Origin: Antechinus flavipes | Taxonomy: Eukaryota | Direction of reading: 5' to 3' | DNA length: 64,000 nt | Assembly: GCF_016432865.1 (NCBI RefSeq) | Contig: NC_067403.1 | Coordinates: 250,666,001 to 250,730,000, forward strand | Shown here: positions 10,504 to 61,450 of the stretch, one piece after another | Position numbering within the stretch: the stretch's first letter is position 1 | Layout: the number at the start of each line of letters is the position of its first letter | The notes under the pieces: generated by a model | What the model was told of the DNA's origin: nothing | Databases searched by the model: none | What the model saw: the letters and a program-made list of their open reading frames with translations, nothing else | Program-made: the position numbers and the translations under genes

Positions 10504-10521
10504 CTAATTATTCTCAAGGGA
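10504..10521 (+). promoter_or_regulatory. Homeodomain (Lhx2-type) + O/E (EBF) composite motif upstream of OR1
   Basis: ctaattattctcaaggga: TAATTA adjacent to TCTCAAGGGA; conserved upstream of all five ORs. Confidence 0.7.
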
Positions 10522-12774
10522 AGAATCAGAGAATTCATAGAAACCAAGGGCATGATGATGTTTACCTTGAATAGTCTGGTAATTTCACAACACCTTCTCC
10601 CTAAGACACTGGCCAATATATTTCACATTATTGTTCTATAATATAAGAATCACCAAAAATCTTCACAATACCTGCAGGTTCAGAGAGTTAGATTTTGAGG
10701 ACATAGTTTTGAGTCTGCAGATAAGAATGGAATGAATTGGTGAGGAAAGAGATAGTCTCCAGATTATTTTTAGAAATGTTTAGAGGGTTGAGAACCCAAT
10801 GGACAATAACAACATATACTGAAAATGATGCACATCAGAAAAAATAACTCAGGTATTATCATTTTTATGTTGGTTATAATTATTTTTCTTTGTAACTGGT
10901 AGGTTGTTTAGGTACTTCATGTGTGAAGTCAAAATCATGGGAATGATTTCTCAGTAATTCTTTTTTTTCTAAGAGAGAGTTTCTGAAAGATAGTCCACAC
11001 ATCATGGTGTGGACAGCATGGTAGGTTGGAATTAAGTAAGACTTTAGTCTGAGTTCTGCTTCTGGTTCTTTTGTCATTTTTATTTCCTTCTGAGAGTATG
11101 TCCAGTTGTTTCTGTCTATATCATTAGGACATTCTTACTTACTTGCTTTTCTCTCCCAATTGACAGTAAGTTTATGGAGGTCAGGGCTCTTGGCCTTTCT
11201 TGGAAACTCCAGTGCTAACCACATTGTCTGGCATGGAGTAGGCACTTAATAAGTGCTTGTTAACTTACTGTAACTTGACTATTCACAAGGCTGAGCGTCT
11301 GTGAGCCTCCTTATATAGAGGGAACATGTGCATAATAATATCTTTGTAGCTCACAGAATCATGTTGAAGCTCATCAAAGATAATATGTAACATATGTTGT
11401 GAATATCAAAAATTTATGGAAACATGAGTCAAACGTATGTTTTTGCTCTATGATGATAGAGCTCAGTTCTATCTTTCATTAAATGCAAAATTTTAATGCT
11501 GATCACAAGGAGTGCAGAGCAAGAAGGACAATTCCTTGCTGTGTTTTTTTTATTTGTAGCTTATCCTTTATGATGAAACACTTCAAAAATTACTGAAGGA
11601 CATGGGAACTCTGTGTCAATTCTAACTTCCTTTCTGTTTCCTCTATCCCCTCATCTTTAATTTAATCTTTGTTAAAGAAAAGATAATTTGGATTTTGAAT
11701 AAATTCATTGGAGGGAGTGCTGAATTTGGAAGCAGAAAACAATTATTTAACCCTGGCTTTATGATTTATAAACTGGGGAAGTTAAGAGTCAATCACAATA
11801 TAAAAATAAATAAATCCATATATCTAGTTCTATGTCTATTTCTCTTAATCTCTATCCTCTCTATCAGACTCCCATGTGTTGTCTATTTTCATTAGTAAAC
11901 AGATTCTCTCCATCAGGTGCCTTTAGAAATAAAATCAACAAGTCATTACTAATACCTTTTCAAAGTAAATTAGTTCATCTTCATAAATGCTGACCTGGGG
12001 AAATAGATTTCCTTTTACACAATAAGAATATCATGCAGAGATTATAGTAATCATAAATGTTGGCTCTGGTAGGGACAGTGCAGATTATATTGTCAAACCT
12101 GCCTATTTTCTAGATGCTTGGCTTGAAGCTAAGAGTGAAAGACATAACTCCAACACTCAAATTCTTTGGAGGAGGTCAAATTGACTCTAAAAAGCAGATC
12201 TCTTGAATTTCCAGTTCCATATTCTGATCATTGAACTAGACAGAAGACATGTGCTAGCTTCTGCCTAGGTTTATTTTAAATAGGGAAAAGATGCCCTAAG
12301 GTATGTAAAACCTTACCTACCTTATTACAGAAAAAATTCAAAATGAGGATAAATGAGAAATTTAAGCAGCTAGGTATTTTTCACCTGATGAACAAAACTC
12401 CTGCTGAAGATGACCATTCAAGTTTGGGAGTAGAAAGGGGACATCTGTTTTTTTGTTGTTTTTTTTTGTTTTTGTTTTTCCCAGAAAGCCCATTTCTTAA
12501 TGTGGACTATCTTAGCAAGAAAGAAGACATACATCTGAGCAGTAAAGTGGTGACTAATGCTTCCTTGTAAACTCAGAATCAGAGCTCTTGAAATGCCTGT
12601 CAAGTGCATAAAAGGCTGGACTACAGAGATAACATTAACAAAGGAAAGAAGCCAATAAATATATGAGGCTCATTTTGAAAGAGATGACATTTCTTTTCTG
12701 TGAAATTCTCTTTAATTTAAGCCTATGATACAAATCTTAAACAATATATGTTAACTATTTCAATTAGGGGGATT

Positions 12775-13025
12775 GAGTGAGCAGGTGGAGAGCACTATAG
12801 AGTGCTTAGACTGAAATCAGGAAGACTCAATTTCATGGATTCAAATCTGACCTCACATACTTAATAGTAGTGTGATCCTGAGCAAGTCACTTAACCCCAT
12901 TTGCCTTATTTCCTTATCTGTTAACTGAGTTACAGGGGATAATGATAAACCACTCCAGTATTTTTGCCTCCAAAAACCCAAATGAGATCATAGAGAGTTG
13001 GAAACAATTGAAAAATGACTTAATA
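12775..13025 (+). mobile_element. Mar1-type marsupial CORE-SINE (paralog at about 22750-22995)
   Basis: CORE sequence (ggttcaaatc...tgtgatcctgagcaagtcacttaacc) with RTE/BovB-like tail aaaccactccagtatttttgcc...aaaaatgact. Confidence 0.8.
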
Positions 13026-13839
13026 TCAACATAGCTATTTGTATTTAGATTTTTCTTTATGAGGGAAACTAAATTTACAGTCATAATAATTGTATTTAAA
13101 GGCTGAGTTTACTATTAATTGTCTTAGTTACTTTGTACAAAAATACTGAATCAATTTGGGCCTCACTTTGCCATCCTGCGAAACAATATTACCAATAATA
13201 TTAACTTAATTGTATAGAAAGTGTGAGTGCTTTGAAACCAATTTTGTGAATACAACTCTATGGAATATGAATTAAAATGATAATCTTTCCCTCATCTTCA
13301 TTTCCCTGTCTCTCTCTTTTTTCCTTCTCCCACTCCCTGTGCTCTCTCCCTCCTCTCCATCTCTTTCTCTTTGTCTCTCTCAAATTAAGATTTATAGATA
13401 TAGATACATAGATAAATGTATAGGTGTAGAAGTATATATGCATATTTATATATGGAAAAAGCTATACAAATAGATGTATGTACACAAATAGATCTATTTA
13501 TATAAGTATGTGTTCAACACATATTTGTGTATGCACATATGCACAAAATTCATTTCTAGGTTTGATGATAATGTTCTATTATCTTTGTTGGGATTTATTT
13601 TCCTAATGTTTATCACTTTCTACTTCTTCTGATCATTTTGCAGAGCCAAATATTTAAAACTCTGTTCCAGAGCTATTGGAATTAGCTTCATTGTTTCTAC
13701 TGTCAGTTTTGCCATCAGCTGTTTTTTATTTTAAAATTCAGTTTGTTCAGGTTCAGACAGAATAGCTTCCAAGTTCTATCTAAGTAAGTATTTTTATTCT
13801 TTCTTTTTTAAAACACTTTGTCCACTTCTGACAAAATTT

Positions 13840-13853
13840 TGATTTATTTTCAG
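13840..13853 (+). promoter_or_regulatory. Probable 3' splice acceptor of the OR1 coding exon (equivalents: AG at 23805-23806 and 39009-39010)
   Basis: Pyrimidine-rich tttattttcag 23 nt before the ATG, conserved in OR2. ORs usually have non-coding 5' exons. Confidence 0.6.
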
Positions 13854-13876
13854 TTAAATTACAGCACAGCAGCAGG

Positions 13877-14896
13877 ATGGGCAACTTCTCAGTCATCACA
13901 GAGTTCCTCCTCATGGAATTTTCCAGCACACGGGAGCTGCAGGTCTTACACGCTGTGCTATTCCTGCTGATTTACCTGGCAGCCCTCCTGGGGAATCTTC
14001 TCACCTGTGCTGCAATTATCACTGACCCACACCTTCACTGTCCTATGTATTTTTTCCTGAGTAACTTATCACTGCTGGATATTGGGACCATCTCCGTCAC
14101 GCTTCCTAAATTCATTGTGAATTCCTTGTGTGGCGTTCAGTCCCTGTCCCTCCTGGGATGTGCTGCACAAATTTTCTTCTTTCTCTTTTTTGGAACAACA
14201 GAGTTTGCTTTGCTTGTGGCCATGTCCTATGACCGCTTTGTGGCCATCTGCCAGCCCCTCCACTATAGCATCATCATGACTCCAGCACGTTGTCTCTGGG
14301 CAGCAGGTGGTTCGTGGCTCAGTGGGCTTCTTTATTCAGCTGTACACACAGGGAACATGTTCCGCCTGCCCTTCTCAGGATCCAATGTGATCCACCAGTT
14401 TTTCTGTGATATTCCTCATGTCTTGAAAGTCTCAGCCTCTGATGTGTTTAATACTGAGTTTCTATTAATTGTGGCAAGTTCGTGTCTTTTGCTTTTCTGC
14501 TTTGCCTTTTTAATTGCATCCTATACTCGCATCTTCTCCAGTGTGCTCAAGATTCCTTCTGTGGAAGGACGCTACAAGGCCATTTCAACCTGCTCCCCTC
14601 AATTGGTGATTCTCATGTTATTTCTCATTTCTGCAATGATTGCAGTCCTCAGGAACATATCAGACACATCACCTATCCAAAACCTTTTAATTGCAATGGC
14701 TTATACAACATTACCTCCCCTGCTGAACCCTCTCATCTATAGCCTGAGGAACCAGAAGGTCACAGCTGCCATGGGTAAGATGATCAAGAGGATATTTTTT
14801 CCAGAAAAAGAAATGTTATTCCATGAAAACATAAAAACATTGAAGAATACGTATTTGGCATGTAAAATGTGTAAGGTAACACATGAAGTAGCCTGA
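13877..14896 (+). CDS. Olfactory receptor, class II, OR14-like (OR1, 339 aa)
   Basis: Intact 7TM ORF with NFS sequon, GN, LHCPMYFFLSNLS, MSYDRFVAICQPLHY, HQFFCDIP, KAISTC and PPLLNPLIYSLRN. Confidence 0.96.
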   Translation: MGNFSVITEFLLMEFSSTRELQVLHAVLFLLIYLAALLGNLLTCAAIITDPHLHCPMYFFLSNLSLLDIGTISVTLPKFIVNSLCGVQSLSLLGCAAQIFFFLFFGTTEFALLVAMSYDRFVAICQPLHYSIIMTPARCLWAAGGSWLSGLLYSAVHTGNMFRLPFSGSNVIHQFFCDIPHVLKVSASDVFNTEFLLIVASSCLLLFCFAFLIASYTRIFSSVLKIPSVEGRYKAISTCSPQLVILMLFLISAMIAVLRNISDTSPIQNLLIAMAYTTLPPLLNPLIYSLRNQKVTAAMGKMIKRIFFPEKEMLFHENIKTLKNTYLACKMCKVTHEVA

Positions 14897-16384: not shown

Positions 16385-16630
16385 TTGTTGTTGTTTAATT
16401 GTCATACTTTTTGTGGCCTTAGTTAGGGATGTCTTGGCAAAAATACTGGAGTGATATGCCATTTCCTTTAGCACTAATTCTTCAGATGAGGAAACTGAGT
16501 TAAATACAATTAAATGACTTTTTCAGATTCACAGAGAGAGTAAATGTATGGGTCCAGATTTGAACTAAGGAATATTAGACTGCTTGACTCCAGGCCCAGC
16601 ACTATATCTCCCATACTACCTAGCTTCCCT
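16385..16630 (-). mobile_element. Mar1-type CORE-SINE
   Basis: Reverse-strand tail (cttggcaaaaatactggagtg...gccatttcctt) and core (gatgaggaaactgag, gatttgaac, tgactccaggcccagcact). Confidence 0.8.
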
Positions 16631-16809
16631 GGCACATAGCTTTTAGGAAGGCAAGATGATGTATTTGTAAATGGAAAATTCATATTTGTCATTTTTTTTA
16701 ATGGCAAATTGTGTATTTGTAGAAATGACAACTTTAGCTTACTTTGTTTTTGTTCAGTCATTTGTAGTAGTGTCTTACAAAAATTTTCTAAATAACTATT
16801 GATTAGAGA

Positions 16810-17690: not shown

Positions 17691-17699
17691 ATTTTTAAC

Positions 17700-18220
17700 A
17701 TTTAAATATTGAATTCTAAATTCTCTTCCCACTTCTTCAGTGGTGATTTAGAAAGCAAGCAACATGATATAAGTTATATGTGAAATGATGTAAGACATGT
17801 ATATAGCTTGGCTTTCAAAATTTATCACTTCTTTCTTTGGAAGTAGATAACATGTTTCATCAGGAATCCTTTGAAATTTTCTTAAATCATTGTATTGATG
17901 AGAATAACTAAGTCTATCATAGTTATAATGGCATTATTGATGATACTATGTAAAATCACATCCTGGTTCTGCTCACTTCACTTTTCAGTTCATATATGTC
18001 TTTCAATGTTTTTCTGAAAGAATTCCCTTCATCATTTATCATAACACAATAGTTCTCCATCACAATTATATACCACAGTTTGTTCAGTCATTACTCAATT
18101 AATGAGAATTCCCCAAGTTTCCAATTGTTTGCCATGACATAAAGACCTTCTATAAATATTTTTATATGCATAAATCCTTTACCTTTTCTTTGATCAATTT
18201 GAGATAGAGATCCAAAAATA
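17700..18220 (-). mobile_element. Old L1 3' region, antisense
   Basis: Antisense L1 3' features (ataccacagtttgttcagtcattactcaatt, gccatgacataaagacc). Confidence 0.65.
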
Positions 18221-19490: not shown

Positions 19491-19549
19491 AATGAGATTA
19501 AGGGAGAAAAGTTTTCACTGTGTTGTTTATGAAAAAGACTGTGCCGTAT

Positions 19550-19567
19550 CTAATTATTCTCAAGGGA
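19550..19567 (+). promoter_or_regulatory. Homeodomain + O/E composite motif upstream of OR2
   Basis: ctaattattctcaaggga, identical to 10504-10521. Confidence 0.7.
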
Positions 19568-21307
19568 CGGGTCAGAGAATCCATAGAAACCAAAGGCATG
19601 ATGATATTTACCTTGAATACTCTGGTGATTTCTTAACACCATCACCAAAAACATTGGACAATATATTTCACATAATTCTATGACATAAGAATCACTAAAA
19701 ATCTTTACAATGCTTGCAGATTAACAGGTTTAGATTTTGAATATCTTGACATACTTTTGAGTCTTCTGATTAGAATGGAATGAATTGGTGAGGAAAGAGA
19801 TAGTCTTCAGATTATTTTTAGAAACTTTTAGAGGATTGAGAACCCAATGGACAATGACAACATATACTGAAAATGATGCACATCAGAAAAAATAACTCAG
19901 GTATTGCCATTTTTATATTGGTTATGATTATTTTTCTTTGTGACTGGTAGGTTATTCAGGTATTTCATGTTTGTGAAAATCATGGGAATGATTTCTCAGT
20001 GATTCTTTTTTTTTTTCTGAGAGATGTCCACACCATGATGTGGACAGCATGGTAGGTTGGAATTAAGCAAGACTTTAGTCTGAGTTCTGCTTCTGAATCT
20101 TTTGCAATTTTGATTTCCTTCTGAGAGTATGTCCAATTATTTTTGTCTATATCATTAGGACATTCTTACTTGCTTGCTTTTCTCTCACAATTGACAGTAA
20201 GTTGTGGAGGGCAGGGCTCTTGGCCTTTCTTGGAAACTCCAGTGCTAACCACATTGTCTGGCACAAACTAAGCACTTAATAAGTATTTCTTAACTTACTG
20301 TAACATGACTATTCATAAGCCTCAGCCTCTCTGAGCCCCCTTAACCTAGTTGTAACATGTAGATAGTATTATCTTTGTAGCTCACAGAGTCATGCTGAGA
20401 CTTATCAGAGATGATATATGTAACATATCTTGAGAATATCAAAAAATCTTATGGAAATGTGTCAAAATTATGTTTTTGCTCTATGATAATAGACCTCAGT
20501 TCTACCTTTAATTGCAAAGTTTTAAAGCTGATCATAAGGAATGCTAGGTAAGAGGGACAATTCCTTGCTGTATTTTTGTTTATCTGTAGCTTAATCTTTA
20601 TGATGGAGCACTTCAAAAATTACTGAAGGACATGGGAGGTAAGTGTCAGTTCTGACTTCACATCTATTTCATCCCCTCATCTTTAACTTAATTTTTGTTG
20701 CAGAAAAGATGGGTTGAACTTTTGAATAAATTTACTGGAGGGAGTGCTGAATATGGAAGCAGAAGACAATTATTTAAACCTGGCTTTGTGATTTACAAAC
20801 TGGAGAACTTAAAGAGTCAATCACTGAATGTCTCTGTTATTCCTTTGTAAATAAAGTACTTGCATATGTGAGTTTAAGCTTCCTTCCAATTTTGAATTTC
20901 TGTTCCTATGGTCATATTTGAAAGAAATATTTAAATAAGAGGATGGACTTAACTGAGGATCTCAGGAATTCCCCAGCTCTTTTCAAAGATAGAAGGTCTT
21001 CAATAATTGCTTCAGGTAAAAACCATATTTCATTGCCTTGATGGACATGCTAGAATTTCTAACTTTTGAATGGAAAATGGACAATTAAATTGCACGAAAT
21101 AAAATAAATATTACTCATTTCTCAATGAAAATTAAAATTTATAGATGTTCATATGACCTGAAACATTCTACATTTGTGCTTTATCATGTTATTCTTAAGA
21201 ATTCTAGGGCTGTAGCTTTTGTTACACTTTTAGTTATAGTGAGGAAAAGAAAAGCCTGAAGCACAACAATATGTATTTTGGTTATGTATTGATGAGAGTG
21301 TGTTTGA

Positions 21308-21338
<31 letters not shown>

Positions 21339-23829
21339 ATTGTGCATAGATGTATGTCTGCTACAGGTCAATGACTATAGTTATACTTACAGGACAGGAG
21401 GTGAGATTATACATAATCACTGAATTCAGGGGTACTGAATTTTAGCAATGCTGTCTAAATGGTGAAATTCTGAGAGTAAATGATGGGATATTTGGAAGTT
21501 TGGAGAATGAATTCTAATGCTGATTTAGGAATTAAGATTTGGGAAAGTGGCTGAGATTTAGAAGTATGTTTGTGAAGTAGAAGGTTAATATAGGTTGATC
21601 GATTTATCTATCCATTTTTCATTCTACCTATCTAATCATCTATATAATTTATCAATCACCACTTAGTTACTATATTCATATATTTAAATATACATATATG
21701 AGTGTGTAAATAGTATTTCATATATCTAAATTTATACAGTTTATATATATATGTGCATATATATATATTTCTATATATGTATCCATTTATTTCTCTGTTA
21801 TCTATCTCTCTATATATTTTTCTCCATAGCATTTTTCTATATCCATATATCTAGTCCTATATCTATTTCTCTTAATCTCTATCCTATCATCCTCTCATGT
21901 CTTGTCCATCTGCATTGATAAACATAAGTTCTTTCCATCAGGTGCCTATAGACATAAAATCACAAAGTAAATTAGTTCATCTTCATAGAGCTGACCTGGG
22001 GAAATAGATTCATTTTACACATTAAGAAATATCACGCAGAGATAATAGCAGTTATAAATGTTGGCTTTGGTAGGGGCAGTGCAGATTGTCAAGACTGTTA
22101 ATTTTCTAGATGCTTGACTTGGTGCTGAGAAGGAAACATGAAAGAGTGACGGTGAAATTCTTAGGAAGAGGTAAAATTAACTGTGAAAATCATATTTCTT
22201 GAATTCCCTGTTCTATCTTCTCATCATTGATCCAGATAGAGACACATTCCCTAGGTTTTCTCTAACTTGGGGAAAGATGCTCTCATAAGAATAAGGAGAA
22301 ACTTTACCCACCTCAGTCACAGAAAAGATTCGAAGTGAGGATAAAAGGGGAATTTATTCAGCTAGGCATTTTTCACCTGATAAATAAAATACGTGCTGAA
22401 GATGGCAGTTCAAGTTTGGGAGCAGAAATGAGACATCTGTTTGCTTGATTTTTCAGAAAGCCATGTCCCTAATGTAGACTGTCTTAGCAAGACTGAAGAG
22501 GCACATCCAAGCAGTAAAATGGCAACTAATGCTTATGTGTAAACTCAGAATCAGAGCTTTTGAAATGCCCATCAAGTGCATAAAAGGCAGGACAAGAGAA
22601 ATGAGTTAACAAAGGAAAGAAAAAAATATGTGAGACTCATTTTGGAAGAGATGACATTTCTACTGTGTGAATTTCTCTTTAGTTTAAGCCTATGACACAA
22701 ATCTTAAACAATATATATTAAATATTTGAATTGGGGGACAGAGTAATTAAGCAGATGAAGAGTACTGTAAAGAGTGCTTGGCCTGAAATGAGGAAGACTC
22801 CATTTCATGGGTTCAAATATGACCTCAGATATTTACCAGTTGTGTAATCCTGAGCAAATCGCTTAATACTGTTTACCTTATTTCCTTATCTTTTATATCT
22901 ATAGGAGATAATGACAAACTACTCCAATATTTTTGCTTCCAAAAACCCAAATGGGAATATAGAGAATTGGAGACAATTGAAAAATGACTTAACATCAACA
23001 TAGCTGTTTGTACTTTTTTTTCTTTTTGAGGGAAAATGCATTTAGAGATATAATAACTGGCTTCAAGTTCTGACTTTACAAGTAATGGTTTCAGATACTT
23101 TGTACAAAATAACTGAATCAATTTGGGCCTTGCTTTATTATCCTGTGAACAATACTACCAATAACATGAACTTAATTGTATATAAAGTCTGAGTGCTTTG
23201 AAAACAATTTTGTGAAAACAAGTCTATGCAATATTAATTAAAAAGATAATCTTCCCCTCATGTTTCTCTCTCTTGCTTTCTCTCTATATTACTCTTTCAA
23301 TCTCTCATTCAAATTAAGATTTATATATAGGTATATAGATAAATGTATAGGTATAGAAGTATATATGTATATGTATACAGAAAGCTATGTAGAGATGTAT
23401 GTAAACAACTATATGTATTTATATATATATACATATATGTATATGCGCTCACACATATATGTGTGTATATACATTGTACAAAATCTATTTCTGCCTTTTG
23501 GAGTGATGTCCTCTCTATTATATTTGTAGGAGTTCACATTCCTAATGTTTACCATGTTTAATTTCCTCTGGTCATTCTGCAAGGTTAAATATTTAAAACT
23601 CTGCTCTGGGACTACTGGAATTAGCCTCATTGTTTCTGCTGTGAGCTCTGCTTTCAGTTGATTTTGATCTTACAATATAATTTTGCTTTTGTTCAGGTTT
23701 AATGTGACAAAACAGCTTCCAATTTCTACCTGAACAAGTATTTTAATTGTTTCTTCTTTTCAACACTTTGGGCCTCCCTGATACTTAAATTTGCATTTAT
23801 TTTCAGTTAAATTACAGCACAGCAGCAGG

Positions 23830-24783
23830 ATGGGCAACTTCTCAATCATCACTGAGTTCCTCCTCATGGAGTTTTCCAGCACACGGGAGCTGCAGGTCTT
23901 ACATGCTGTGCTGTTCCTGCTGATTTACCTGGCAGCCCTTCTGGGGAATTTTCTCACCTGTGCTGCAATTATCACTGACCCACACCTTCACTGTCCTATG
24001 TATTTTTTCCTGAGTAACTTATCCCTGCTGGATATCGGCAACATCTCAGTCACGCTTCCTAAATTCATTGTGAATTCTTTGTGTGGTATTCAGTCCCTGT
24101 CCCTCCTGGGCTGTGCTGCCCAGATGTTCTTCTTTATTCTTTTTGCAGCCACAGAGTTTGCTTTGCTTGTGGCCATGTCCTATGACCGCTATGTGGCCAT
24201 CTGCCAGCCCCTCCACTATGGTATCATCATGACTCCAACACGTTGTCTCTGGGCAGCAGCTGGATCATGGCTCAGCGGGCTTCTTTATTCAGCTGTACAC
24301 ACAGTGAACATGTTCCGCCTGCCCTTCTCAGGATCCAATGTGATCCACCAGTTTTTCTGTGACATCCCTCATGTCTTGAAAGTCTCAGCCTCTGATGTGT
24401 TTAATACTGAGTTTGTATTAATTGTAGCAAGTTCATGTTTTTTGTTATTTTGCTTTGCCTTTTTAATCGCATCCTACGCTCGCATCTTCTCCAGTGTGCT
24501 CAAGATTCCTTCTGTGGAAGGGCGCTACAAGGCCATTTCCACATGCTCCCCTCAGTTGATGATCATCATGTTATTTCTCTCTTCTTCAATGATGGCAGTT
24601 TTCAGGGATACATCAGACACATCACCTATCCAAAACCTTTTAACTGCAATGGCCTACACAACACTGCCTTCACTGTTGAACCCTCTTATTTATAGTCTGA
24701 GGAACAAGAAGGTCACAGCTGCCATGGGCAAAATGATCAAGAAAATATTTTATCTCAAGAAATATTCATCCTTGAAAACTTAA
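23830..24783 (+). CDS. Olfactory receptor, OR14-like (OR2, 317 aa)
   Basis: Intact ORF from the ATG at 23830 (the ORF track starts at an upstream TTG). MSYDRYVAICQPLHY, KAISTC and NPLIYSLRN present; close paralog of OR1. Confidence 0.96.
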   Translation: MGNFSIITEFLLMEFSSTRELQVLHAVLFLLIYLAALLGNFLTCAAIITDPHLHCPMYFFLSNLSLLDIGNISVTLPKFIVNSLCGIQSLSLLGCAAQMFFFILFAATEFALLVAMSYDRYVAICQPLHYGIIMTPTRCLWAAAGSWLSGLLYSAVHTVNMFRLPFSGSNVIHQFFCDIPHVLKVSASDVFNTEFVLIVASSCFLLFCFAFLIASYARIFSSVLKIPSVEGRYKAISTCSPQLMIIMLFLSSSMMAVFRDTSDTSPIQNLLTAMAYTTLPSLLNPLIYSLRNKKVTAAMGKMIKKIFYLKKYSSLKT

Positions 24784-35599: not shown

Positions 35600-35617
35600 T
35601 TAATTACACTCAAGGGA
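35600..35617 (+). promoter_or_regulatory. Homeodomain + O/E composite motif upstream of OR3
   Basis: ttaattacactcaaggga. Confidence 0.7.
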
Positions 35618-36098
35618 AAGGCCAGAGAATCTGTGGTTAATAAGGATGAGATTATAGATGTAGCTCTGCAGTAACTTCAGGAACCATTTCTTCAAAGGAC
35701 ATTGGGCAGTATATTTTCATTCTCATAAGGTTCATCACATATTTCAGCAAATCTAATAGCCTCACATTGGACAGTATCAGAACCCTTTGCCTCTGAAGAT
35801 CCAAATGAAAATTGAACCAATACAGTGAAGACAGAGGTAATCTTTGGATACTGTCTATCACCTTTTATTTGGTAAAGAAAAATAATCAATACAAACTTTG
35901 GCAAAGAGAAATGCCACAACTCTTCACTCAGGTATTTATTTTTCTTTGCTATTTTATTTCTGAATGGCCAATTGGTTTAATTAATAAAATGGGTCTTAGA
36001 AGTCTTGGGCTTGAAATCTGCCTATGGAATTATTCTTTACAGACTCATTATGGAATGACAGACTTAATTTAAGGAAAATGCAATTTAAATCCTTCTTC

Positions 36099-36436
36099 TA
36101 TTGGTTCTCAAAGTATGGTCCAATGAATCCCGTAATTCAGTTTGAAAGTTCCCTCCAGGACTCCAGCAGTTCTTCAGTATGGAGCTTTAAGGAACTTCTG
36201 CCCATTCAATAGACATATTACGTAGGTCCCACATTTCTCAAGAAGCTGAAACAGATATTGATTGGTAGCCTTTCAGAGGATCTACAACTTATCTACAATA
36301 AGTTTTTATTTTTAATATGGCAACTATCCATAAACATAATCCACATAAAACTCTTTGGACATATTTTCAACAAATTTTAATATTATAAAGGGATATTGAG
36401 AACAACCACAAAAAAAAAAAAGTTTGAGAACCACTG
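36099..36436 (+). mobile_element. hAT (Charlie1-like) non-autonomous DNA transposon relic
   Basis: TIRs tattggttctcaaagtatggtcc ... aaagtttgagaaccactg and subterminal taagtttttatttttaatatgg...ccacataaaactctttgg. No 8-bp TSD; interrupted by a 125-bp insertion. Confidence 0.75.
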
Positions 36437-37850: not shown

Positions 37851-38030
37851 NNNNNNNNNNNNNNNNNNNNNNNNNNNNNNNNNNNNNNNNNNNNNNNNNN
37901 NNNNNNNNNNNNNNNNNNNNNNNNNNNNNNNNNNNNNNNNNNNNNNNNNNNNNNNNNNNNNNNNNNNNNNNNNNNNNNNNNNNNNNNNNNNNNNNNNNNN
38001 NNNNNNNNNNNNNNNNNNNNNNNNNNNNNN
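37851..38030. other. Assembly gap (180 N)
   Basis: Run of N between the OR3 promoter motif and the OR3 CDS; true size unknown. Confidence 1.
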
Positions 38031-39011
38031 TACTATAATAAATATATAAATAAGCTCCTTAAAGTTTGCAAAGGTTTTTTTTTTTGCATGCTTTTCCTAG
38101 TCCCCATCCTAATAATTCTCAAGAGAAAAGTTAAAAGATTTAAATCTTTTTACTAATTAGGGCTATATTTTTGAGCAGCTCAAAGGGAAAGCTTGCTACA
38201 TTTGCTTTCTGAAGATCTGGCATTACAAAGTGGTTTTGCAACACATTATCTGTACCAACCCAAGATAATGTGATATCTCTTTAAGCTGCCTTTTAATTAA
38301 AGGAGTTGGACCTATGACCTCTAAAATCCCATGCAACTCTGAGTCAATAATCTTGTGATTCAATTTGAAAGTTCCCTCCAAATGATGTCTTCCAGGACTC
38401 CAGTTCTTCAGTTATGGAGCTTTAAGGAACTTCTGCCCATTCAATAGACATAATGGGAAGGTCCCATCTTTCTAAGAGGCTGAAATAGACAACAGAGCTT
38501 TGACACCCTAAAGAATGGAAATGCAGATGTGCATGGAATAGTGTCAAGGTGCCTGAAATCAGATCAACGAAAACTAAAGTTGTAGTCAGCACAGTGTGTC
38601 TGACAATACAAAGTAATCAAATTGTCTGTCATCCATCTAGCCAGTCATCTATGATCTACCTGTATCTATGTATGCAAATAGATGTTTTATATCAGGTTAT
38701 GCTAGTATCTTGCAAAAAAGAATCAGTCTTGGGATTGTAGGGTGTGTGTGTATGCATATGGCAGGTCAGGAGCAGAGGTCCTATTAAGTCAATTCAAGAA
38801 GGCCTAATTTGCAAAGTGAGATGTATATTTTCACTTTATGAACTGAATGGGATTGCAGGAGAATGGTCACATCATGAGCTTTTTAAAATGGTCTGATTGC
38901 CTCTCTAACCTGATGAGTAAAATAGATTGAAATTCATGACTTTTCTATGTAATAAAGTGCTTCTGTTCTCTCTTTCTAAAATTTGGTAACCTCTACCCAT
39001 ATTGTTACAGG

Positions 39012-40001
39012 ATGAATTACGGGACCCCAGAAGACATGAGCAATTGTACCATCATCATGGAATTCTTCCTTATGGAGTATTCCAGCATCCGAGAGCTGCA
39101 GGTCTTGCACGCTATTCTTTTTTTGGTCATATACGTTGCAGCCCTGCTGGGGAATCTCCTCACTGTCAGTGCCATTGTCACCGACCCACACCTTCACTCT
39201 CCAATGTATTTTTTTCTGAGCAACCTTTCCCTGTTGGATCTTGGTTGCATCTCAGTCACTCTTCCCAAATTCATTGTGAATTCTCTGACAGGCAATCGAG
39301 CCATTTCTCTCCTGGGTTGTGCTGCTCAGGTTTTCTTCCTTATCTTCTTTGTTGCAACAGAAATTTTTTTGCTTGTGGCGATGTCCTATGACCGCTTTGT
39401 GGCCATTTCCCACCCTTTACACTATGGAGTCACCATGACACCATTCCGCTGTCTTTGGGCGGCAATTGGTTCATGGCTCAGTGGGCTCATCTATTCAGCT
39501 GCACACACAGGGAACATGTTCCGTCTGCCTTTCTCAGGATCCAATGTGATCCATCAGTTTTTTTGTGACATCCCTCATGTCTTGAAGGTCTCATCTCCTG
39601 AGGTTCGTAATACTGAGTATATACTCCTTGCCACCAGTTCCATTTTAATTTTATTCTGCTTTGTTTTTTTAATCATATCCTATACTTATATCTTCTCCAC
39701 TGTATTTAAAATGCCCTCTGTGGAGGGGCGTCACAAAGCTTTGTCTACATGTTCACCTCAACTGATTATCTTTCTCTTATTCCTTCTTGCTGGCATGTTC
39801 AGTGTTTTTGGTCATGCTTCAGACACTTCCTCGGTGCAGAATCTTTTGATTTCAATGACTTACACAATTTTGCCTCCATTTATGAATCCTATTATTTATA
39901 GTCTGAGAAATATGCAAATCAAGGTTGCACTGGCCAGGATAATCAAAACTACCTTTTTTCCCAAGAAGGAAATGTCTGTCTTTGAAACAATTAAAAAGTA
40001 A
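39012..40001 (+). CDS. Olfactory receptor, OR14-like (OR3, 329 aa)
   Basis: Intact ORF with NCT sequon, LHSPMYFFLSNLS, MSYDRFVAISHPLHY, KALSTC and PPFMNPIIYSLRN. Note AIC to AIS in the post-DRY motif. Confidence 0.95.
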   Translation: MNYGTPEDMSNCTIIMEFFLMEYSSIRELQVLHAILFLVIYVAALLGNLLTVSAIVTDPHLHSPMYFFLSNLSLLDLGCISVTLPKFIVNSLTGNRAISLLGCAAQVFFLIFFVATEIFLLVAMSYDRFVAISHPLHYGVTMTPFRCLWAAIGSWLSGLIYSAAHTGNMFRLPFSGSNVIHQFFCDIPHVLKVSSPEVRNTEYILLATSSILILFCFVFLIISYTYIFSTVFKMPSVEGRHKALSTCSPQLIIFLLFLLAGMFSVFGHASDTSSVQNLLISMTYTILPPFMNPIIYSLRNMQIKVALARIIKTTFFPKKEMSVFETIKK

Positions 40002-49460: not shown

Positions 49461-50260
49461 GTTTGCTGCAGTTTGCAGTTTGCCTCTTCTGCTCTTTTTA
49501 CACTTGAGGAAACAAGTAAACAGTGCACTTGAAGTTAGCAAGAACTGAATTTAAATCCAGTCTCAACAATTATTAATTGTAGGATCCTCAACTATACCCC
49601 TAACTTCCAATGGTCTCATTTTTCTCATCTTTAAAATAGCTATAATAATATTAAGACCTACCTTCCATGGTGGGTATGAGAATCCAATGAGATGTCATTT
49701 GTAAAATACTTTGCAAACACAATAATACAGCATGCACAAATTGACTATAAAGGACATATGACAAAAAATACTAGCTGTATCCAGAGAAAGAAATGATAAG
49801 TAAATGTATATACAGAATAATTTTACATATACATACATACATGCACATATATACAAGTCTATTTGTGTATATTGTGTATTATTTTTTTTTTTACTATCAC
49901 TATATGTTGAAACCTAGACAACTCATATAGGGTTAATAGGGATTTGCAAATAAAAACAGAGTGGGTTCTCACAGTCCTGCACTGTGTATCACAGAACACT
50001 TTAAGGGTCAAGGAAGTAAAGGATTGCAAATCACTCTCTGTTGTTATCTTACTTTTAAGCTGAAGTGTGTATGGGATATCCTGAAGATTTACAACAACAA
50101 GGATGTTTGAGGTAGAATGTCAGTATGAAGAAAAGAAAGAGACTATAAGAATCAAGAGTCTGTTAAGGTCCCTTTAATTTATCCACCTTTACCTAAGGAA
50201 AAGGTGTATACCTTACCTGGTTGCCCCAGTTATGAGGAAAAGGAAACATGATTATCTTAT

Positions 50261-50433
50261 GAGAAAGATAATCAGTTGAGGGGAACAGGTAGACAAGGCT
50301 TTGAGGCGCCCTTCCATAGAGGGCATTTTAAATATGGCAGAGAAGATATAAGTATAGGATGTAACTAAAAAAACAAAGCAGAGTAAAACTACAGTGGAAA
50401 TGGTGGCAAGGAGTACATGCTCAGTATCACGAA
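50261..50433 (-). pseudogene. 173-bp OR coding fragment (TM5 to start of TM6), copy of 51473-51645
   Basis: Gap-free alignment to the OR4 CDS with only a handful of substitutions; no start codon and no remainder of the gene. Confidence 0.95.
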
Positions 50434-51232
50434 TTTTATCTCACTTTTTATAAAGCCACAAAAGGATAATAGTTGAGTGCTTTCTAATCCCATTAACTTT
50501 ATCTGAAGGACTCATCTTTACCTAAATGAAAACAGTAAGAAAGTAACTTTGCATTTTGTATAAGACTTAAAGAAATCATTGCCTCTGTTAATTGCTCCCT
50601 CTGGATCTCTAATGTTATCAGCTTATCTAGGAGAAATCCATTCATTAGGGGTCCCTTGAAAAATGTCCATCCTTTCTTCAGAAACTCAAAACTGAAATGC
50701 AATAAAGTGTTTAGTAAATACACTCATAAAGAATGTTTTCGATGGGGGATCATGGAAGGCTCCATGAAGGTGGGTGGTGACAATTGAACTGAATTTTGAA
50801 ATAGAAGCACAGTTTAAAAAGCTAAGGTTGATAATTGTCTTTTCTGGCACACACACAAAAAAGAGTAACTTTAAAGATATCTAGCTGAGAAATCAAAGGT
50901 TATTCTTGGAAGAGAATTCTTCTATTATAATTCAGGATTATGCAATGAAATTTTGTTGCCCATGAGAAAACTCAATCTTCCTTTAACTTGTTTATTGATT
51001 TCAATTCTTTGTATCAGATCCATGGCAAAATAATTTATTAAATGCACATTGATTTATAGGGTCCCCCAAGATGTAAATAATTGAAAATATTTTAAATAAG
51101 CAATTCCTTTGATGAAATAAAACAATTGTCCAAGCTGAATGTTTTGGTGATTTATTTTTTTTTAATTTGTAGACAAAACAAGAAATTAATTTCATTTCAG
51201 ACTAATTATCTTGTTATCTTGGACATGAAATC

Positions 51233-52237
51233 TTATTCATACATTCTCTTACTTTTTATTGTTTCAAAGATGGACATTTCCTGCTTGGAAAAAAAAAAAG
51301 TTTTGATAATCCTACCCAGTGCTATCTTGATTTTCATGTTCCTCAAACTATAAATGATAGGATTCATAAATGGAGGCAATATTGTGTAAGTCATTGAAAT
51401 CAAAAGATTCTGCACTGGGGAAGTGTCTGATAAGGGACCTAAGACTGTGACCATGCCAGACAGAACAAATAAGAGAAAGATAATCAGTTGAGGGGAACAG
51501 GTAGACAAGGCTTTGAGGCGTCCTTCCACAGAGGGCATTTTAAATACGGCAGAGAAGATATAAGTATAGGATGTAACTAAAAAAACAAAGCAGAGTAAAA
51601 CTACAGTGGAACTGGTGGCAAGGAGTATATACTCAGTATCACGAACTTCAGAAGATGAGACCTTCAAGACATGAGGGATGTCACAAAAAAATTGATGGAT
51701 CATATTGGATCCTGAGAAAGGCAGACGGAACATGTTCCCTGTGTGTAGAGCTGAATAGATGAACGAACTAATCCATGAACCAGCTACCGCCCAAAGACAG
51801 CGGAATGGTGTCATGGTGACCCCATAGTGCAAGGGGTGGCAAATGGCCACAAAGCGGTCATAGGACATCGCCACAAGCAAAGCAAATTCTATTGCTGCAA
51901 AGAAGAGAAAGAAGAAAACCTGAGCAGCACAGCCCAGGAGAGAAATGGCTTGATTGCCTGTCAGGGAATTCACAATGAATTTGGGAAGAGTGACTGAGAT
52001 GCAGCCAAGATCTGACAGGGAAAGATTGCTCAGAAAAAAATACATTGGAGAGTGAAGGTGTGGGTCAGTGACAATGGCAGTGATAGTGAGGAGATTCCCC
52101 ATCACGGCTGCAATGTATATGAGCAAGAAAAGAATAGCATGCAAGACCTGCAGCTCTCGGATGTTGGAAAACTCCAAAAGGAAGAATTCCATGATGATGG
52201 TACAATTGCTCATGTCTTCTGGGCTCTTGTAATTCAT
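51233..52237 (-). CDS. Olfactory receptor, OR14-like (OR4, 334 aa)
   Basis: Intact ORF with all core OR motifs (MSYDRFVAICHPLHY, KALSTC, NPIIYSLRN). Confidence 0.96.
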   Translation of the reverse strand: MNYKSPEDMSNCTIIMEFFLLEFSNIRELQVLHAILFLLIYIAAVMGNLLTITAIVTDPHLHSPMYFFLSNLSLSDLGCISVTLPKFIVNSLTGNQAISLLGCAAQVFFFLFFAAIEFALLVAMSYDRFVAICHPLHYGVTMTPFRCLWAVAGSWISSFIYSALHTGNMFRLPFSGSNMIHQFFCDIPHVLKVSSSEVRDTEYILLATSSTVVLLCFVFLVTSYTYIFSAVFKMPSVEGRLKALSTCSPQLIIFLLFVLSGMVTVLGPLSDTSPVQNLLISMTYTILPPFMNPIIYSLRNMKIKIALGRIIKTFFFSKQEMSIFETIKSKRMYE

Positions 52238-54160
52238 CTTGTAATAACATGAGTAAGGGATAAGAAATTCTAGAAGGAGAGAATAGAAGCACTTTATTAC
52301 ATAGAAAAGTCATGATTCTTACTTACCATGTTAGAGAGGCAATAAAGATAGTTTTAAACCTTAATATGACCATCCTCTTGCAATCACATTCAATCCATCA
52401 AGTGAAAATGTATTCCTCACTGAACAAACTGGGCTTTCTTGAGTTGATTTAATTAATTGGACCTCATTTCCTAGATTAATTCCCTTTTGCAAGATGACCA
52501 ACATATCCCAATGCAAAATATGTATATGCATGCATACATACAGATAGATTATAGATGCTAAATAGGCCCTTTATTGAAAAAGTTGCATTGCTAGATACTG
52601 TGAATTGACTAAAACTTAAGTTTTCAGTAAGGCTTTCAGCATCTAGATACTATTTCACACACAAGTACATTTCCATTCTCTAGGTTGTCAATGCTCTGAA
52701 TGTGCTTTAAAGACTTTGATTTCCAATAGATAAAGTCTAGCTACCTCAAATCTATGTTCTTCCACCTGACTTAATTAAATTATTCATTTTTGATGTATTC
52801 ATTTTCTTAACACTAATCCCTATACCCAAAAACACACTCAGATATACCATTAAGTAGCCTTTTTCTTATTTTACTTTAAAAACTTGGATTATTTAGTTTA
52901 TTTCTCCCTCTATTTTTGGAGTATGTAAATTTTGATAATAGGTTATATAAACACAGTGACCAAAAAGCAAAAAGCCAAGGCATTGGAATGAGACTATCCA
53001 ACTTTCCCTTGTTATTTATATTGGAAATCATTATTTGCTCATAACATATATTTCATATCATACATGCATTCTCTAATACTAATGATGAGGTCTATGATTT
53101 TATCAAAGTAGGATAATACTAGGAGAGAAAATCTTTCCTGCAACTTCAGTGTTATCAACAAATAATAGTCTTAATGGTTTTAGGCACTGCAAAGTTAAGT
53201 GATTTAGGAAAGGCACAGCAGTTTCTGTCACAGTCTGCTTTTGAATTTCTTTCTACAAAGACATTTCTCTAACTAGTTTCCTGTTACCTAAAAACTATAA
53301 TGATTATATTAATTATAATAATAACTTATAGTCATTATTTTATTGACATACAACCTGTTAAAGACTTCTCAAAACACTTTATCCAAAGGAATTCATTTCA
53401 ATTATCCATAACCCTGAGAAAGGGAAAGAGTAGATTTTATCCTACTTTGAGGAAATTTTGTAAATTTCTCATAATATATATATCTAACCTGAGCTAGAGT
53501 TAGTGTCTATTTATATATGATAGCCAATAATAGCTAATATTTACCTGACACTATTTTGCAAAATATTTTACAAAGATTATGTTTATAGTTCAAACTCTCT
53601 GAGATCCTATAGATATTATTATGGATCAGAAATTGAAGCTCAGAAAGGGTAAATTAAATATACTCAATTACACAAGTTCTATATCCTAAAGGAAGAATTC
53701 AAGTTGCAGTTTTTCTAAATTCAAATCTACCACAACATAATGACTAGCTAATAGGTAATTCAAAATGCAGAGAATAATCCAGCCATACTTCTAACATCCA
53801 CTTAATTAACTAAACAAATTGGCAATTCAGATATGGAATATCAACTAAAATAACATTTGAGTGAAGAGTCATGGCATTTCTCCTTTCCAAAGTTTGTTTT
53901 AATTGTTTTTTTTACCCCTAAATCAAGGACAAAGATCCCATCTGTCCTTACCGTATTGGTTCTGTTCTCATTTGAAGCTTCAGAGAGCAAAAGGAGCTGA
54001 AACTGTACCATGTGAGGCTACTAGATTTTCTGAAATATTTGACCAACCTTATGTGAGTGGAACTATAATGTCCAATATCCTTTAGAGAAATATTTTCTGA
54101 AATTCCCAGGGGATCCAAAGTTATATTCTCATCCTTTTTAACCACAGATTCTCTGGTCTT

Positions 54161-54178
54161 TCCCTTGAGTATAATTAG
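54161..54178 (-). promoter_or_regulatory. Homeodomain + O/E composite motif upstream of OR4
   Basis: Reverse complement reads ctaattatactcaaggga. Confidence 0.7.
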
Positions 54179-57100: not shown

Positions 57101-58470
57101 GATAACACATTTGGTCTTGGCGACCCACATCTCAATCATAGCATAGTCTTTTGACCCTTACTTTCTGAGCATATACTCCTATTGTTCCCTCTGGATGCAT
57201 GGTACCTTTTGGGAAGTTCAGTCATCAGGGTTTCCTAAGCCTGATTCTATCCTTAATTCATCTCCCAACAGGAAAGGTTGATTTCTTCCTCACTAACAGA
57301 ATTTTAATGACAGTCTGTTCTTGTTATATATGATGTTTCATCTTTGGCAAGTTGTTCTCGTAGAAAAGGATACTAGCAAAATAAAAGAAATGGTAAATTG
57401 AGAAATTCTCTTGTACCTCGTTTTTTATCTTCAGAATCTAAGACCATATTCTCCCTCAAGAATGGAGTTTATCTTTCATTACTAGATATCTTTTAAAATG
57501 CTAGAATTCACTGACATTCCTCAAAGTTGTCTCCTGAAAGCAATGATTTTTTTTTGATACTATTTTATTTTTCCAAATTCTTGTAAAGGTAGTTTTCAGT
57601 ATTCACTTTTGGAAAACTTTGTTCCAATCCAACGATTTTTAAAAATAATTTTATCTCACTTTTTATAAAGCTACAAAAGGATAATAGTTGAGTGCTTTCT
57701 AATCCCATTAAGTTTATCTGAAGGACTCATCTTTACATAGATATAACTAAAAAAACATCAGTAAGAAAGTAACTTTGCATTTTATATAAGACTTAAAGAA
57801 ATCATTGCCTCTGTTAGTTGCTCCCTCTGGATCTCTAATGTTATCAGCTTATCTAGGAGAAATGATTCATTAGAGGTTCCTTGAAAAATTTCCATCCTTT
57901 CTTGAGAAACTCAAAACTGAAATGCAATAAAGTGTTTAGTGAATGCACTCATAAAGAATGTTTTCAATGGGGGATCAAGGAAGGCTCCATGAAGGTGGGT
58001 GGTGACAATTGAACTGAATTTTGAAATAGAAGTACAGTTTAAAAAGCTAAGGTTGGTAATTGTCTTTTCTGGCACACACACAAAAAAGAGTAACTTTAAA
58101 GATATCTAGCTGAGAAGAAAGGTTATTCTTGGAAGAGAATTCTATTATAATTCAGGATTATGCAATGAAATTTTGTTGCCCATGAGAAAACTCAATCTTC
58201 CTTTAACTTGTTTATTGATTTCAATTCTTCATATCAGATCCATGACAAAATAATTTATTGAATGCACATAGATTTATAGGGTCCCCCAAGATGTAAATAA
58301 TTGAAAATATTTTAAATAAGCAATTCCTTTGATGAAATAAAACAATTGTCCAAACTGAATGTTTTGGTGATTTATTTTTTTTTTTAATTTGTAGCCAAAA
58401 CAAGAAATTAATTTCATTTTAGACTAATTATCTTGTTATCTTGGACATGAAGTCTTATTTATACATTCCC

Positions 58471-59460
58471 CTACTTTTTAATTGTTTCAAAGATGGACAT
58501 TTCCTTCTTGGGGAAAAAAAAAGTTTTGATAATCCTACCCAGTGCAATCTTGATTTTCATGTTCCTCAGACTATAAATGATAGGATTCATAAATGGAGGC
58601 AATATTGTGTAAGTCATTGAAATCAAAAGATTCTGTACTGGGGAAGTGTCTGATAAGGGACCTAAGACTGTGACCATGCCAGCCAGAACAAATAAAAGAA
58701 AGATAATCAGTTGAGGTGAACAGGTAGACAAGGCTTTGAGGCGCCCTTCCACAGAGGGCATTTTAAATACAGCAGAGAAGATATAAGTATAGGATATAAC
58801 TAAAAAAACAAAGCAGAATAAAACTACAGTGGAACTGGTGGCAAGGAGTATATATTCAGTATCACGAACCTCAGAAGATGAGACCTTCAAGACATGAGGG
58901 ATGTCACAAAAAAACTGATGGATCATATTGGATCCTGAGAAAGGCAAACGGAACATGTTTCCTGTATGTAGAGCTGAATAGATGAACGAACAAACCCATG
59001 AACCAATTGCCACCCAAAGACAGCGGAATGGTGTCATGATGACCCCATAGTGTAAGGGGTGGCAAATGGCCACAAAGCGGTCATAGGACATCGCCACAAG
59101 CAAAGTAAGCTCTGTCGCAGCAAAGAATATATAGAAGAAAACCTGAGCAGCACAGCCCAGGAGAGAAATGGCTTGATTGCCTGTCAGGGAATTCACAATG
59201 AATTTGGGAAGAGTGACTGAGATGCAGCCAAGATCTGACAGGGAAAGATTGCTTAGGAAAAAATACATTGGAGAATGAAGGTGTGGGTCAGTGACAATGG
59301 CAGTGATAGTGAGGAGATTCCCCATCAAGGCTGCAATATATATGAGCAAGAAAAGAATGGCGTGCAAGACCTGCAGCTCTCGGATACTGGAAAACTCCAT
59401 TAGGAAAAATTCCATGATGATGGTATAATTTCTCATGTCTTCTGGGCTCCTGTAATTCAT
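58471..59460 (-). CDS. Olfactory receptor, OR14-like (OR5, 329 aa from the ATG shared with OR3/OR4)
   Basis: Intact ORF. The ORF track extends it 25 aa to an ATG at 59535, but the equivalent ATG is out of frame in OR3 and OR4. Confidence 0.94.
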   Translation of the reverse strand: MNYRSPEDMRNYTIIMEFFLMEFSSIRELQVLHAILFLLIYIAALMGNLLTITAIVTDPHLHSPMYFFLSNLSLSDLGCISVTLPKFIVNSLTGNQAISLLGCAAQVFFYIFFAATELTLLVAMSYDRFVAICHPLHYGVIMTPFRCLWVAIGSWVCSFIYSALHTGNMFRLPFSGSNMIHQFFCDIPHVLKVSSSEVRDTEYILLATSSTVVLFCFVFLVISYTYIFSAVFKMPSVEGRLKALSTCSPQLIIFLLFVLAGMVTVLGPLSDTSPVQNLLISMTYTILPPFMNPIIYSLRNMKIKIALGRIIKTFFFPKKEMSIFETIKK

Positions 59461-61432
59461 CTTGTAATAACATGAGTAGGGGATACCAAATTCTAGAAGG
59501 AGAAATAGAAGCACTTTATTACATAGAAAAGCCATGATTCTTACTTACCATGTTAGAGAGGTAATCAGGATATTTTTTAAAACCCTTAATATGACCATCC
59601 TCCTGCAATCACATTCAATCCATCAAGTGAAAATGTATTCCTTACTGAACAAACTGGGCCTTCTTGAGTTGATTTATTTAATTGGACCTCTACTGACCTG
59701 CCCTATGTATATACATATTCACCTCACTACATTTCCTAGATTAATTCCCTTTTGCAAGATGACCAACATATCTCCATGCAAAATATATATATACATGCAT
59801 ACATACAGATAGATTATAGATGCTAAATAGGCCCTTTATTGAAAAAGTTGCATTGCTAGATACTATGAATTGACTAAAACTTAAGTTTTCAGTAAGGCTT
59901 TCAGCATCTAGATACTATTTCACACACAAGTACATTTCCATTCTCTAGGTTGTCAATGCTCTGAATGTGCTTTAAAGACTTTGATTTCCAATAGATAAAG
60001 TCTATGCTCCTCCACTTGACTTCATTAATTTAATTATTCAATTTTGATGTATTTCCTCTACTTAACACTAATCGTTACACACAAAAACACACTCAGATAT
60101 ACCGCTAAGTAGTCTTTTTCTTATTTTACTTTAAAAACTTGGATTATTTAGTTTATTTTTCCCTCTATTTTTGGAGTATGTAAATTTTGATAATAGGTTA
60201 TATAAACACAGTGACCAAAAAGCAAAAAGCCAAGGCATTGGAACGAGAATGTCCAACTTCCCCTTGTTATTTATATTGGAAATCATTATTTGCTCATAAC
60301 ATATATTTCATATCATACATGCATTCTCTACTACTAATGATGAGGTTTATGATTTTATCAAAGTAGGACAATACTAGGAGAGAAAATCTTTCCCACAACT
60401 TCAGTGTTATCAACAAATAATAGTCTTAATGATTTTAGGCACTGCAAAATTAAGTGATTCAGGAAAGGCACAGCAGTTTCTGTCACAGTCTGCTTTTAAA
60501 TTTCTTTCTGCAAAGACATTTCTCTAACTAGCTTCCTGTTACCTAACAATGATAGTGATTATATATTAATTATAATAATAACTTATAATCATTATTTTAT
60601 TGGCACACAACCTGTTCATAGAAAGACTTCTCAAAACACTTTATCCAAAGGAATTCATTTCACTTATCCATAACTCTGAGAAAGGAAAAGGGTCTTATCC
60701 CACTTGGATGAAATTTTGTGAATTTTTCACAATCTGCATATCTAACCCGAGCTAGAGTTAGTGTCTGTTTATGTATGATAGACAATTATAACTAATATTT
60801 ACCTGATACTATTTTACAAAATATTTTACAAAGTTCATGTTCACAGTTCAAACAAACTCTCTGAGATCCTGTGGATATTATACCTATATTATGGATCAGA
60901 AATTGAAGCTCAGAGAAAGTAAATTAAATATACTCAGTTCCATAGGTGCTATATCCTAAAGGAAGAATTCAAGTTGCAGTTTTTCTAAATTCAAATCTAC
61001 CACACACAAATCTACCTGGCTAATAGGTAATTCAAAATGCAGAGAACAATCCATCCATATGTCTAACATCCGCTTAATTAACTAAACAAATTGGCAATTC
61101 AGATATGGAATATCAACTAAAATAACATTTGAGTGAAGAGTCATGGCATTTCTCCTTTCCAAAGTTTGTTTTAATTGCTTTTTTGACCCCTAAATCAAGG
61201 ACAAAGATCCCATCTGTCCTCACCGTATTGGTTCTGTTCTCATTTGAAGCTTCAGAGAGCAAAAGAAGCTGAAACTGTACCATGTGAGGCTACTAGAGTT
61301 ACTGAAATATCTGATCAACCTTATGTGAGTGGAACTATAATGTCCAATATCCTTTAGAGAAATATTTTCTGAAGTTCTCAGGGGATCCAAAGTTGTATTC
61401 TCATCCTTTTTAATCGCAGATTCTCTGGTCTT

Positions 61433-61450
61433 TCCCTTGAGTATAATTAG
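61433..61450 (-). promoter_or_regulatory. Homeodomain + O/E composite motif upstream of OR5
   Basis: Reverse complement reads ctaattatactcaaggga. Confidence 0.7.

Follow-up and report, generated by a model that had tools for sequence, protein, structure and literature searches.

The window analysed here is a stretch of 64,000 nucleotides of Antechinus flavipes DNA (contig NC_067403.1, positions 250,666,001 to 250,730,000; all coordinates below are counted from its first letter). It contains five intact olfactory receptor (OR) reading frames, and upstream of each lies a copy of one 18-bp element, the subject of this study. The five proteins are 'olfactory receptor 14I1-like', and their closest relatives come from Antechinus flavipes, Sminthopsis and Sarcophilus. 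The genes fall into two subfamilies. Subfamily A comprises g1 (coding exon 13877–14896, + strand) and g2 (23830–24783, + strand), whose proteins are 89% identical. Subfamily B comprises g3 (39012–40001, + strand), g4 (51233–52237, − strand) and g5 (58471–59460, − strand), with identities of 84–93%. Between A and B, the identity drops to 68–71% for the proteins, 73–75% for the coding DNA and 56–65% for the four-fold degenerate sites.

In a maximum-likelihood tree the two subfamilies form separate clades, each with a Shimodaira–Hasegawa-like approximate likelihood ratio test (SH-aLRT) support of 99. Monodelphis and Australian marsupials are represented in both clades, so the A/B duplication predates the split of the living marsupials and is older than the divergence of the American and Australian lineages, the age of which is well established. 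With regard to the starts of the reading frames, the open frame of g5 reaches 59535 and would add 25 codons upstream of the conserved ATG (59461–59535, − strand), while that of g2 can be extended (23791–23829, + strand) only via a TTG. The ATGs at 59460 in g5 and at 23830 in g2, the latter homologous to the ATG of g1, are the likely starts, and the coordinates above are counted from them.

Sequence and distribution of the element

A search of the window for YTAATTAYWCTCAAGGGA gives exactly five matches, starting at 10504, 19550 and 35600 on the + strand and lying at 54161–54178 and 61433–61450 on the − strand. Each of the five intact OR14I1-like genes has one copy upstream, on the same strand as the gene. 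The distance from the start of the 18-mer to the conserved ATG is 3373 bp for g1, 4280 bp for g2, 3412 bp for g3 (a nominal figure, as it spans an assembly gap), 1941 bp for g4 and 1990 bp for g5. No match to YTAATTAYWCTCAAGGGA was found across 100 dinucleotide-preserving shuffles of the window. When three mismatches were allowed, one more site appeared at 38109 with two mismatches; it was rejected as a sixth copy, having none of the shared context described below, and chance alone would give about one match of this quality.

In g1 the element reads C-TAATTA-T-TCTCAAGGGA. The homeodomain core TAATTA and the 9-mer CTCAAGGGA are unchanged in all five copies, and the differences are limited to the 5′ flanking base and the two junction bases: g3 carries T, C and A at positions 1, 8 and 9, respectively, while g4 and g5 carry A at position 9. 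There is no insertion or deletion, and the length is constant. The half adjoining the homeodomain core resembles an Olf-1/Ebf (O/E) site. Compared with TCCCNNGGGA, it matches at 9 of 10 positions in g1 and g2 (TCTCAAGGGA) and at 8 of 10 in g3 to g5 (ACTCAAGGGA); one half-site is perfect and the second degenerate, a combination often seen among the O/E-like sites of OR genes.

The conservation extends somewhat beyond the 18-mer. Five bp 3′ of it stands CAGAGAAT, invariant in all five copies (10527–10534 in g1, and at the paralogous positions). With the five variable bases in between, the 18-mer and CAGAGAAT make up a 31-bp block conserved in all five genes, at 10504–10534 (g1), 19550–19580 (g2) and 35600–35630 (g3) on the + strand and at 54148–54178 (g4) and 61420–61450 (g5) on the − strand. 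CAGAGAAT could be matched to no verifiable motif; the CNTCTGG/TCTGG motif of Michaloski 2011 was considered, and it gives no match across both subfamilies. On the 5′ side, ATGTTG in g1 to g3 corresponds to ATGTTA in g4 and g5, and AAAAAGAC in the former to AAAAGGAC in the latter. A 30-nt version of the block had no match in a scan of metagenome contigs.

These observations bear out an earlier note on this DNA, which had described a homeodomain core joined to an O/E-like site upstream of all five OR genes, oriented with its gene, 1.9–4.3 kb from the ATG and embedded in a short shared context. It had also remarked that the upstream regions of the two subfamilies are otherwise hard to align, which agrees with the finding by blastn that A and B show no similarity outside the coding exon.

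Conservation between the two subfamilies

The five 18-mers descend from one ancestral element through tandem duplication and are not five independent events. For this reason the shuffle test above is not the relevant null. What has to be asked of tandem paralogs is whether the element is conserved relative to its flanks. For that comparison, the 718 bp surrounding each of the five motifs were aligned with MAFFT. The A-versus-B identity is 91% in the motif and 40–48% overall, and the motif ranks first among all 18-column windows. No variation is seen in 15 of its 18 columns, whereas invariant columns make up 32% of the background (best-window column permutation, P=0.005); in the longer block of 31 columns, which ends with CAGAGAAT, 23 are invariant (P=0.0009). 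Moreover, CTCAAGGGA is the sole 9-mer found at a collinear position in all five non-coding units, each of which is 7–9.7 kb long.

Could such an island have been produced by something other than selection? Gene conversion between the subfamilies was considered and rejected, as no tract was found: the longest exact match between A and B outside the coding exon is a 13-mer, AT-rich and non-collinear, and within the coding exon it is 26 nt. An origin from a transposable element was rejected too, since the block occurs at the five genes only and A and B share mere islands of it. To judge from these alignments, the 18-mer is under constraint. Two fixed half-sites with a variable junction and a constant length would look like the pattern expected of two protein-binding half-sites with a constrained gap. 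The earlier statement that each gene carries a conserved composite is thus right in that the element is much better conserved than its flanks between two old subfamilies, but it overstated the independence of the copies, which go back to one ancestral promoter.

Layout of the putative promoter

After the motif, the next-best A-versus-B windows all lie downstream of it and in a fixed order. The second-best window, with 78% cross identity, lies some 85 bp beyond the motif and consists of TTGG(N)CA(N)TATA, a block that is CCAAT/NF-I-like and TATA-like in sequence. It is located at 10605–10623 in g1, 19650–19668 in g2 and 35698–35715 in g3 (+ strand), and at 54062–54079 in g4 and 61334–61351 in g5 (− strand). 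A short ATAAG follows about 20–30 bp further 3′. The third-best window is a GT splice-donor block, 207–220 bp after the motif. The region around the motif is AT-rich and has no CpG island, with 31–34% GC and 0–4 CpG in 700 bp; in the mouse, the mean is 36%.

From these signals a short non-coding first exon may be predicted for every gene: 10643–10739 in g1 (5′ end approximate) and 19685–19787 in g2, both with the donor TTG/GTGAGG; 35725–35824 in g3, with ACA/GTGAAG; and, on the − strand, 53952–54052 in g4, with ACG/GTAAGG, and 61224–61324 in g5, with ACG/GTGAGG (the slash marks the putative exon–intron boundary; g1 to g3 are on the + strand). A second possible donor, CAG/GTATT, occurs at 35931 in g3 and also in g1 and g2. 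At the other end of the putative intron, polypyrimidine–AG acceptors precede the ATG by 23 nt in subfamily A (in g1 the likely AG ends at this distance), by 1 nt in g3, and by 32 or 0 nt in g4 and g5, the AG at 32 nt being the candidate in g4. The motif would accordingly be placed about 100–125 bp upstream of the start of the first exon. The conserved TTGG/TATA-like block, the GT donor and the acceptors at the ATG together place the motif at a likely promoter, as had been proposed before, the transcription start being a prediction from these signals.

Between the motif and the TATA-like block, g4 and g5 have a second O/E site that is absent from g1 to g3. In g4 it is TCCCAGGGGA (54104–54113, strand not assigned), a full match to TCCCNNGGGA; in g5 it is TCTCAGGGGA (61376–61385, strand not assigned), with one mismatch. 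Judging from this distribution, the second site is a lineage-specific gain in the youngest duplicates.

The assembly gap, a run of N at 37851–38030, is located between the motif and the ATG of g3, in the predicted g3 intron and outside the element; it is in non-coding DNA and affects no reading frame. The sequences on its two sides are collinear with the introns of g4 and g5, in the same order and on the same strand, and are consistent with one continuous intron. The gap sits in a stretch of about 650 bp that is specific to g3 relative to g4 and g5, and 180 of these bases are N. The g3 intron also contains two copies, 81% identical, of a repeat resembling the mammalian-wide interspersed repeat (MIR), at 36121–36255 and 38345–38489; the right copy begins about 315 bp past the gap, within the g3-specific stretch.

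Some other features of the window concern the duplication units. The similarity between the g1 and g2 units begins about 190 bp 5′ of the motif (at about 10315 and 19360), so that the 5′ edge of the duplication unit lies nearly at the promoter block. Upstream of the g1 unit, an open frame of 210 codons (6130–6762, + strand) resembles a fragment of the endonuclease/reverse transcriptase encoded by open reading frame 2 (ORF2) of long interspersed nuclear element 1 (LINE-1). Downstream of g4, an isolated, short receptor fragment at 50225–50440 (− strand) corresponds to residues ~196–261 and is 76% identical to g4; it is a partial duplicate without the promoter block.

Comparison with the Greek Island composite

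In the mouse, a composite of Lhx2 and Ebf sites at fixed spacing marks the Greek Island enhancers rather than promoters (Monahan 2017, PMC5608512), and a 2025 review states that the composite is not found in promoters (PMC12547500). The earlier note had summarized this literature accurately. A preprint describes the Lhx2 and Ebf sites as 'stereotypically separated by 1 bp' and gives the search pattern WWAHDRRBHHHHNDRDD (PMC11643329). The probe used for the Sfaktiria island in an electrophoretic mobility shift assay reads TAATTGA followed by TCTCCAAGGA.

The sites in the window read TAATTAT followed by TCTCAAGGGA in subfamily A, and TAATTAT or TAATTAC followed by ACTCAAGGGA in subfamily B. Their 1-bp spacing and their register are those of the Sfaktiria probe, and the non-consensus T of TCTC is common to the probe and the window sites. 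Against the published pattern, in contrast, the five sites all have a mismatch at position 7, joined in g3 to g5 by one at position 8, whereas Sfaktiria passes. The pattern is very loose, with 406 matches in the window versus about 303 in shuffles; therefore, failing it counts only slightly against membership, and a pass would have meant little. This, the strict Pulupa composite pattern, was discarded as a test, being too loose to inform. A further difference may lie in the orientation of the homeodomain site. The flank preferred by Lhx2 is the C of CTAATTA, that is, TAATTAG on the other strand. In the window sites this C faces away from the Ebf site, which suggests a homeodomain orientation opposite to that of TAATTRR in the published pattern. 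The description of these elements as enhancer-grade accordingly has support in part, from their spacing and register, but not from the bases at position 7 (5/5 sites) and position 8 (g3 to g5), nor from the O/E half, which is weak.

How unusual would a composite at an OR promoter be? Of the ~215 OR promoters that head the list in the mouse source data, about 4 reach a composite score of at least 10, and the island Kea is among these. In that sample composite-like OR promoters are rare but known, at about 2% of the promoters. Co-binding by Lhx2 and Ebf is recorded for 10 mouse OR promoters.

One more sequence of this kind is present in the window. In the 3′ flank of g4, TAATTG-N-TCCCTCTGGA at 50589–50605 (+ strand) has the same 1-bp register as the promoter sites. 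It was rejected as a kept composite: the paralogous sequence of g5, near 57817–57833, reads TAGTTG, and the site is probably a chance occurrence (about 0.08 expected).

Discussion

We consider that the 18-mer is probably an ordinary proximal promoter element of OR genes, made of a homeodomain and an O/E site, which has been under selection since before the A/B duplication. In the promoter ancestral to this group of OR14I1-like genes, it would be the core upstream element, consisting of a homeodomain site of the Lhx2/Emx2 type (TAATTA, mostly CTAATTA), one base, and an O/E-like site of the Ebf/Olf-1 type, namely T or A plus CTCAAGGGA. Transcription from this promoter would yield a non-coding first exon of about 90–100 nt, spliced over an intron of 1.7–4 kb to the single coding exon. 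The promoter would have been copied along with the gene by the tandem duplications, and purifying selection would keep both half-sites and their spacing while the surroundings decay. By analogy with mouse OR promoters, Lhx2 and Ebf may act through the element to make the promoter accessible and active in whichever olfactory neuron chooses the gene. As far as sequence signals can tell, the promoter reading appears well supported.

Several points weigh against this interpretation. The O/E half is imperfect, with TCTC or ACTC where TCCC is expected. CTCAAGGGA could also suit another factor, for example one of the NK2-class homeodomain proteins with their CTCAAG core. If the slower rate at four-fold degenerate sites is taken as neutral, the 15 invariant columns of 18 become only borderline after correction for scanning (about 0.1 by our own estimate). 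Finally, the conservation was measured on paralogs in one genome, which amount to two deep lineages.

The predicted layout agrees in most respects with what has been reported for class II OR promoters of the mouse, such as those of M71 and MOR23 and those surveyed by Young 2011, Clowney 2011 and Plessy 2012. In a set of 314 mouse OR promoters, a conserved O/E site no more than 200 bp from the start is present in 78%, and a TATA match between −60 and −10 in 39% (PMC3247239); of 913 mouse OR gene models, 866 include non-coding exons that precede the coding one (PMC4154679). The antechinus promoters are likewise AT-rich and CpG-poor, and both the O/E-like and the homeodomain site would lie within about 200 bp of the predicted start. 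The sequence also points to the same TATA-like box, short non-coding first exon, kilobase-scale intron and single coding exon. What sets them apart is the arrangement of the two sites. In the mouse promoters the spacing is variable and juxtaposition is uncommon, whereas in antechinus the sites abut at a fixed 1 bp, and this arrangement has been kept across paralogs older than the crown marsupials.

That a juxtaposed homeodomain and O/E-like pair can be functional is seen from the HD2 composite of the core J element, in which the two sites are also juxtaposed and the mutation of which abolishes or strongly reduces activity (PMC7804114). The J element, however, is a long-range class I enhancer conserved from platypus to human, while the antechinus sites are gene-proximal and belong to class II genes of family 14.

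Three alternative explanations have to be weighed against an ordinary promoter element. The sites might be promoter-resident composites of the Greek Island type, co-bound and accessible in many olfactory neurons and joining enhancer hubs, so that enhancer and promoter would be one and the same element. The general build is indeed shared: a homeodomain core, one base and a degenerate 10-bp Ebf site in which a run of pyrimidines precedes one of purines. The register and the non-consensus T are those of the Sfaktiria composite probe, the 1-bp spacing is that given in PMC11643329, and this spacing is invariant over both subfamilies although the junction bases vary. There are also mouse precedents in the 10 co-bound OR promoters and Kea, which likewise have a composite-like element at an OR promoter, the Greek Islands there overlapping promoters. 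Those promoters, however, belong to scattered single genes and were defined by chromatin immunoprecipitation sequencing (ChIP-seq), whereas the antechinus genes are a whole group of paralogs that share the element by descent. The Greek Islands themselves are intergenic, in contrast to the promoter-proximal position of the antechinus sites, and in the literature the composite is said to be depleted from promoters or 'not found in' them. The published pattern does not allow the junction bases seen here (at position 7 in 5/5 sites and at position 8 in g3 to g5), the Lhx2 flank appears reversed and would point away from the Ebf site, and the Ebf half reaches only 8–9 of 10 matches. On balance, we regard an identity with the Greek Island composites as rather unlikely.

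An even less probable explanation would make the block a regulatory element, upstream or intronic, with transcription starting elsewhere, either further upstream or near the coding exon. The start is a prediction here, several 5′ exons and alternative starts are frequent in OR genes (PMC4154679), and the second donor CAG/GTATT in g1 to g3 would fit a more complex 5′ structure. Set against this, all the non-coding blocks conserved between A and B are found within about 250 bp and in the order homeodomain plus O/E site, TATA-like block, GT donor; just upstream of the ATG only acceptor-like tracts are conserved; and the homology of the g1–g2 duplication reaches no more than about 190 bp beyond the motif on the 5′ side. 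It is still harder to imagine that the shared 18-mer has no function, being a mere remnant of common ancestry or a product of gene conversion between the paralogs, and we hold this to be very improbable. All the copies do stem from one duplication series, and the excess of conservation is modest when judged by the four-fold-site rate. Yet the element is an island of 18–31 bp in unalignable DNA without a conversion tract, the permutation tests are significant, and the conserved bases are those of two known factor sites, with the junction between them left variable.

Taken as a promoter element of the ordinary kind, the 18-mer behaves mostly as current knowledge predicts, and its value is confirmatory, as a clean but largely expected example. 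It would extend the Lhx2/Ebf promoter logic derived from the mouse, with its homeodomain and O/E sites, to the receptor genes of marsupials, and it offers a sharp paralog footprint in the form of two invariant half-sites, a fixed gap and a free junction. The block may also serve as a sequence landmark by which marsupial genome annotations could be given the 5′ exons and start sites that OR14I1-like genes still lack. Since a composite-like arrangement at promoters is rare in the mouse, this gene group may offer a natural experiment on whether enhancer-like binding follows from the spacing alone. It is unlikely that an entire ancient OR14 lineage of marsupials uses a juxtaposed Lhx2–Ebf site of the Greek Island style as a promoter element, enhancer-like in being constitutively co-bound and hub-competent. 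If this were true, the division between promoters and enhancers proposed from the mouse would be blurred, and there would be a hint that Greek Islands and OR promoters interconvert in evolution.

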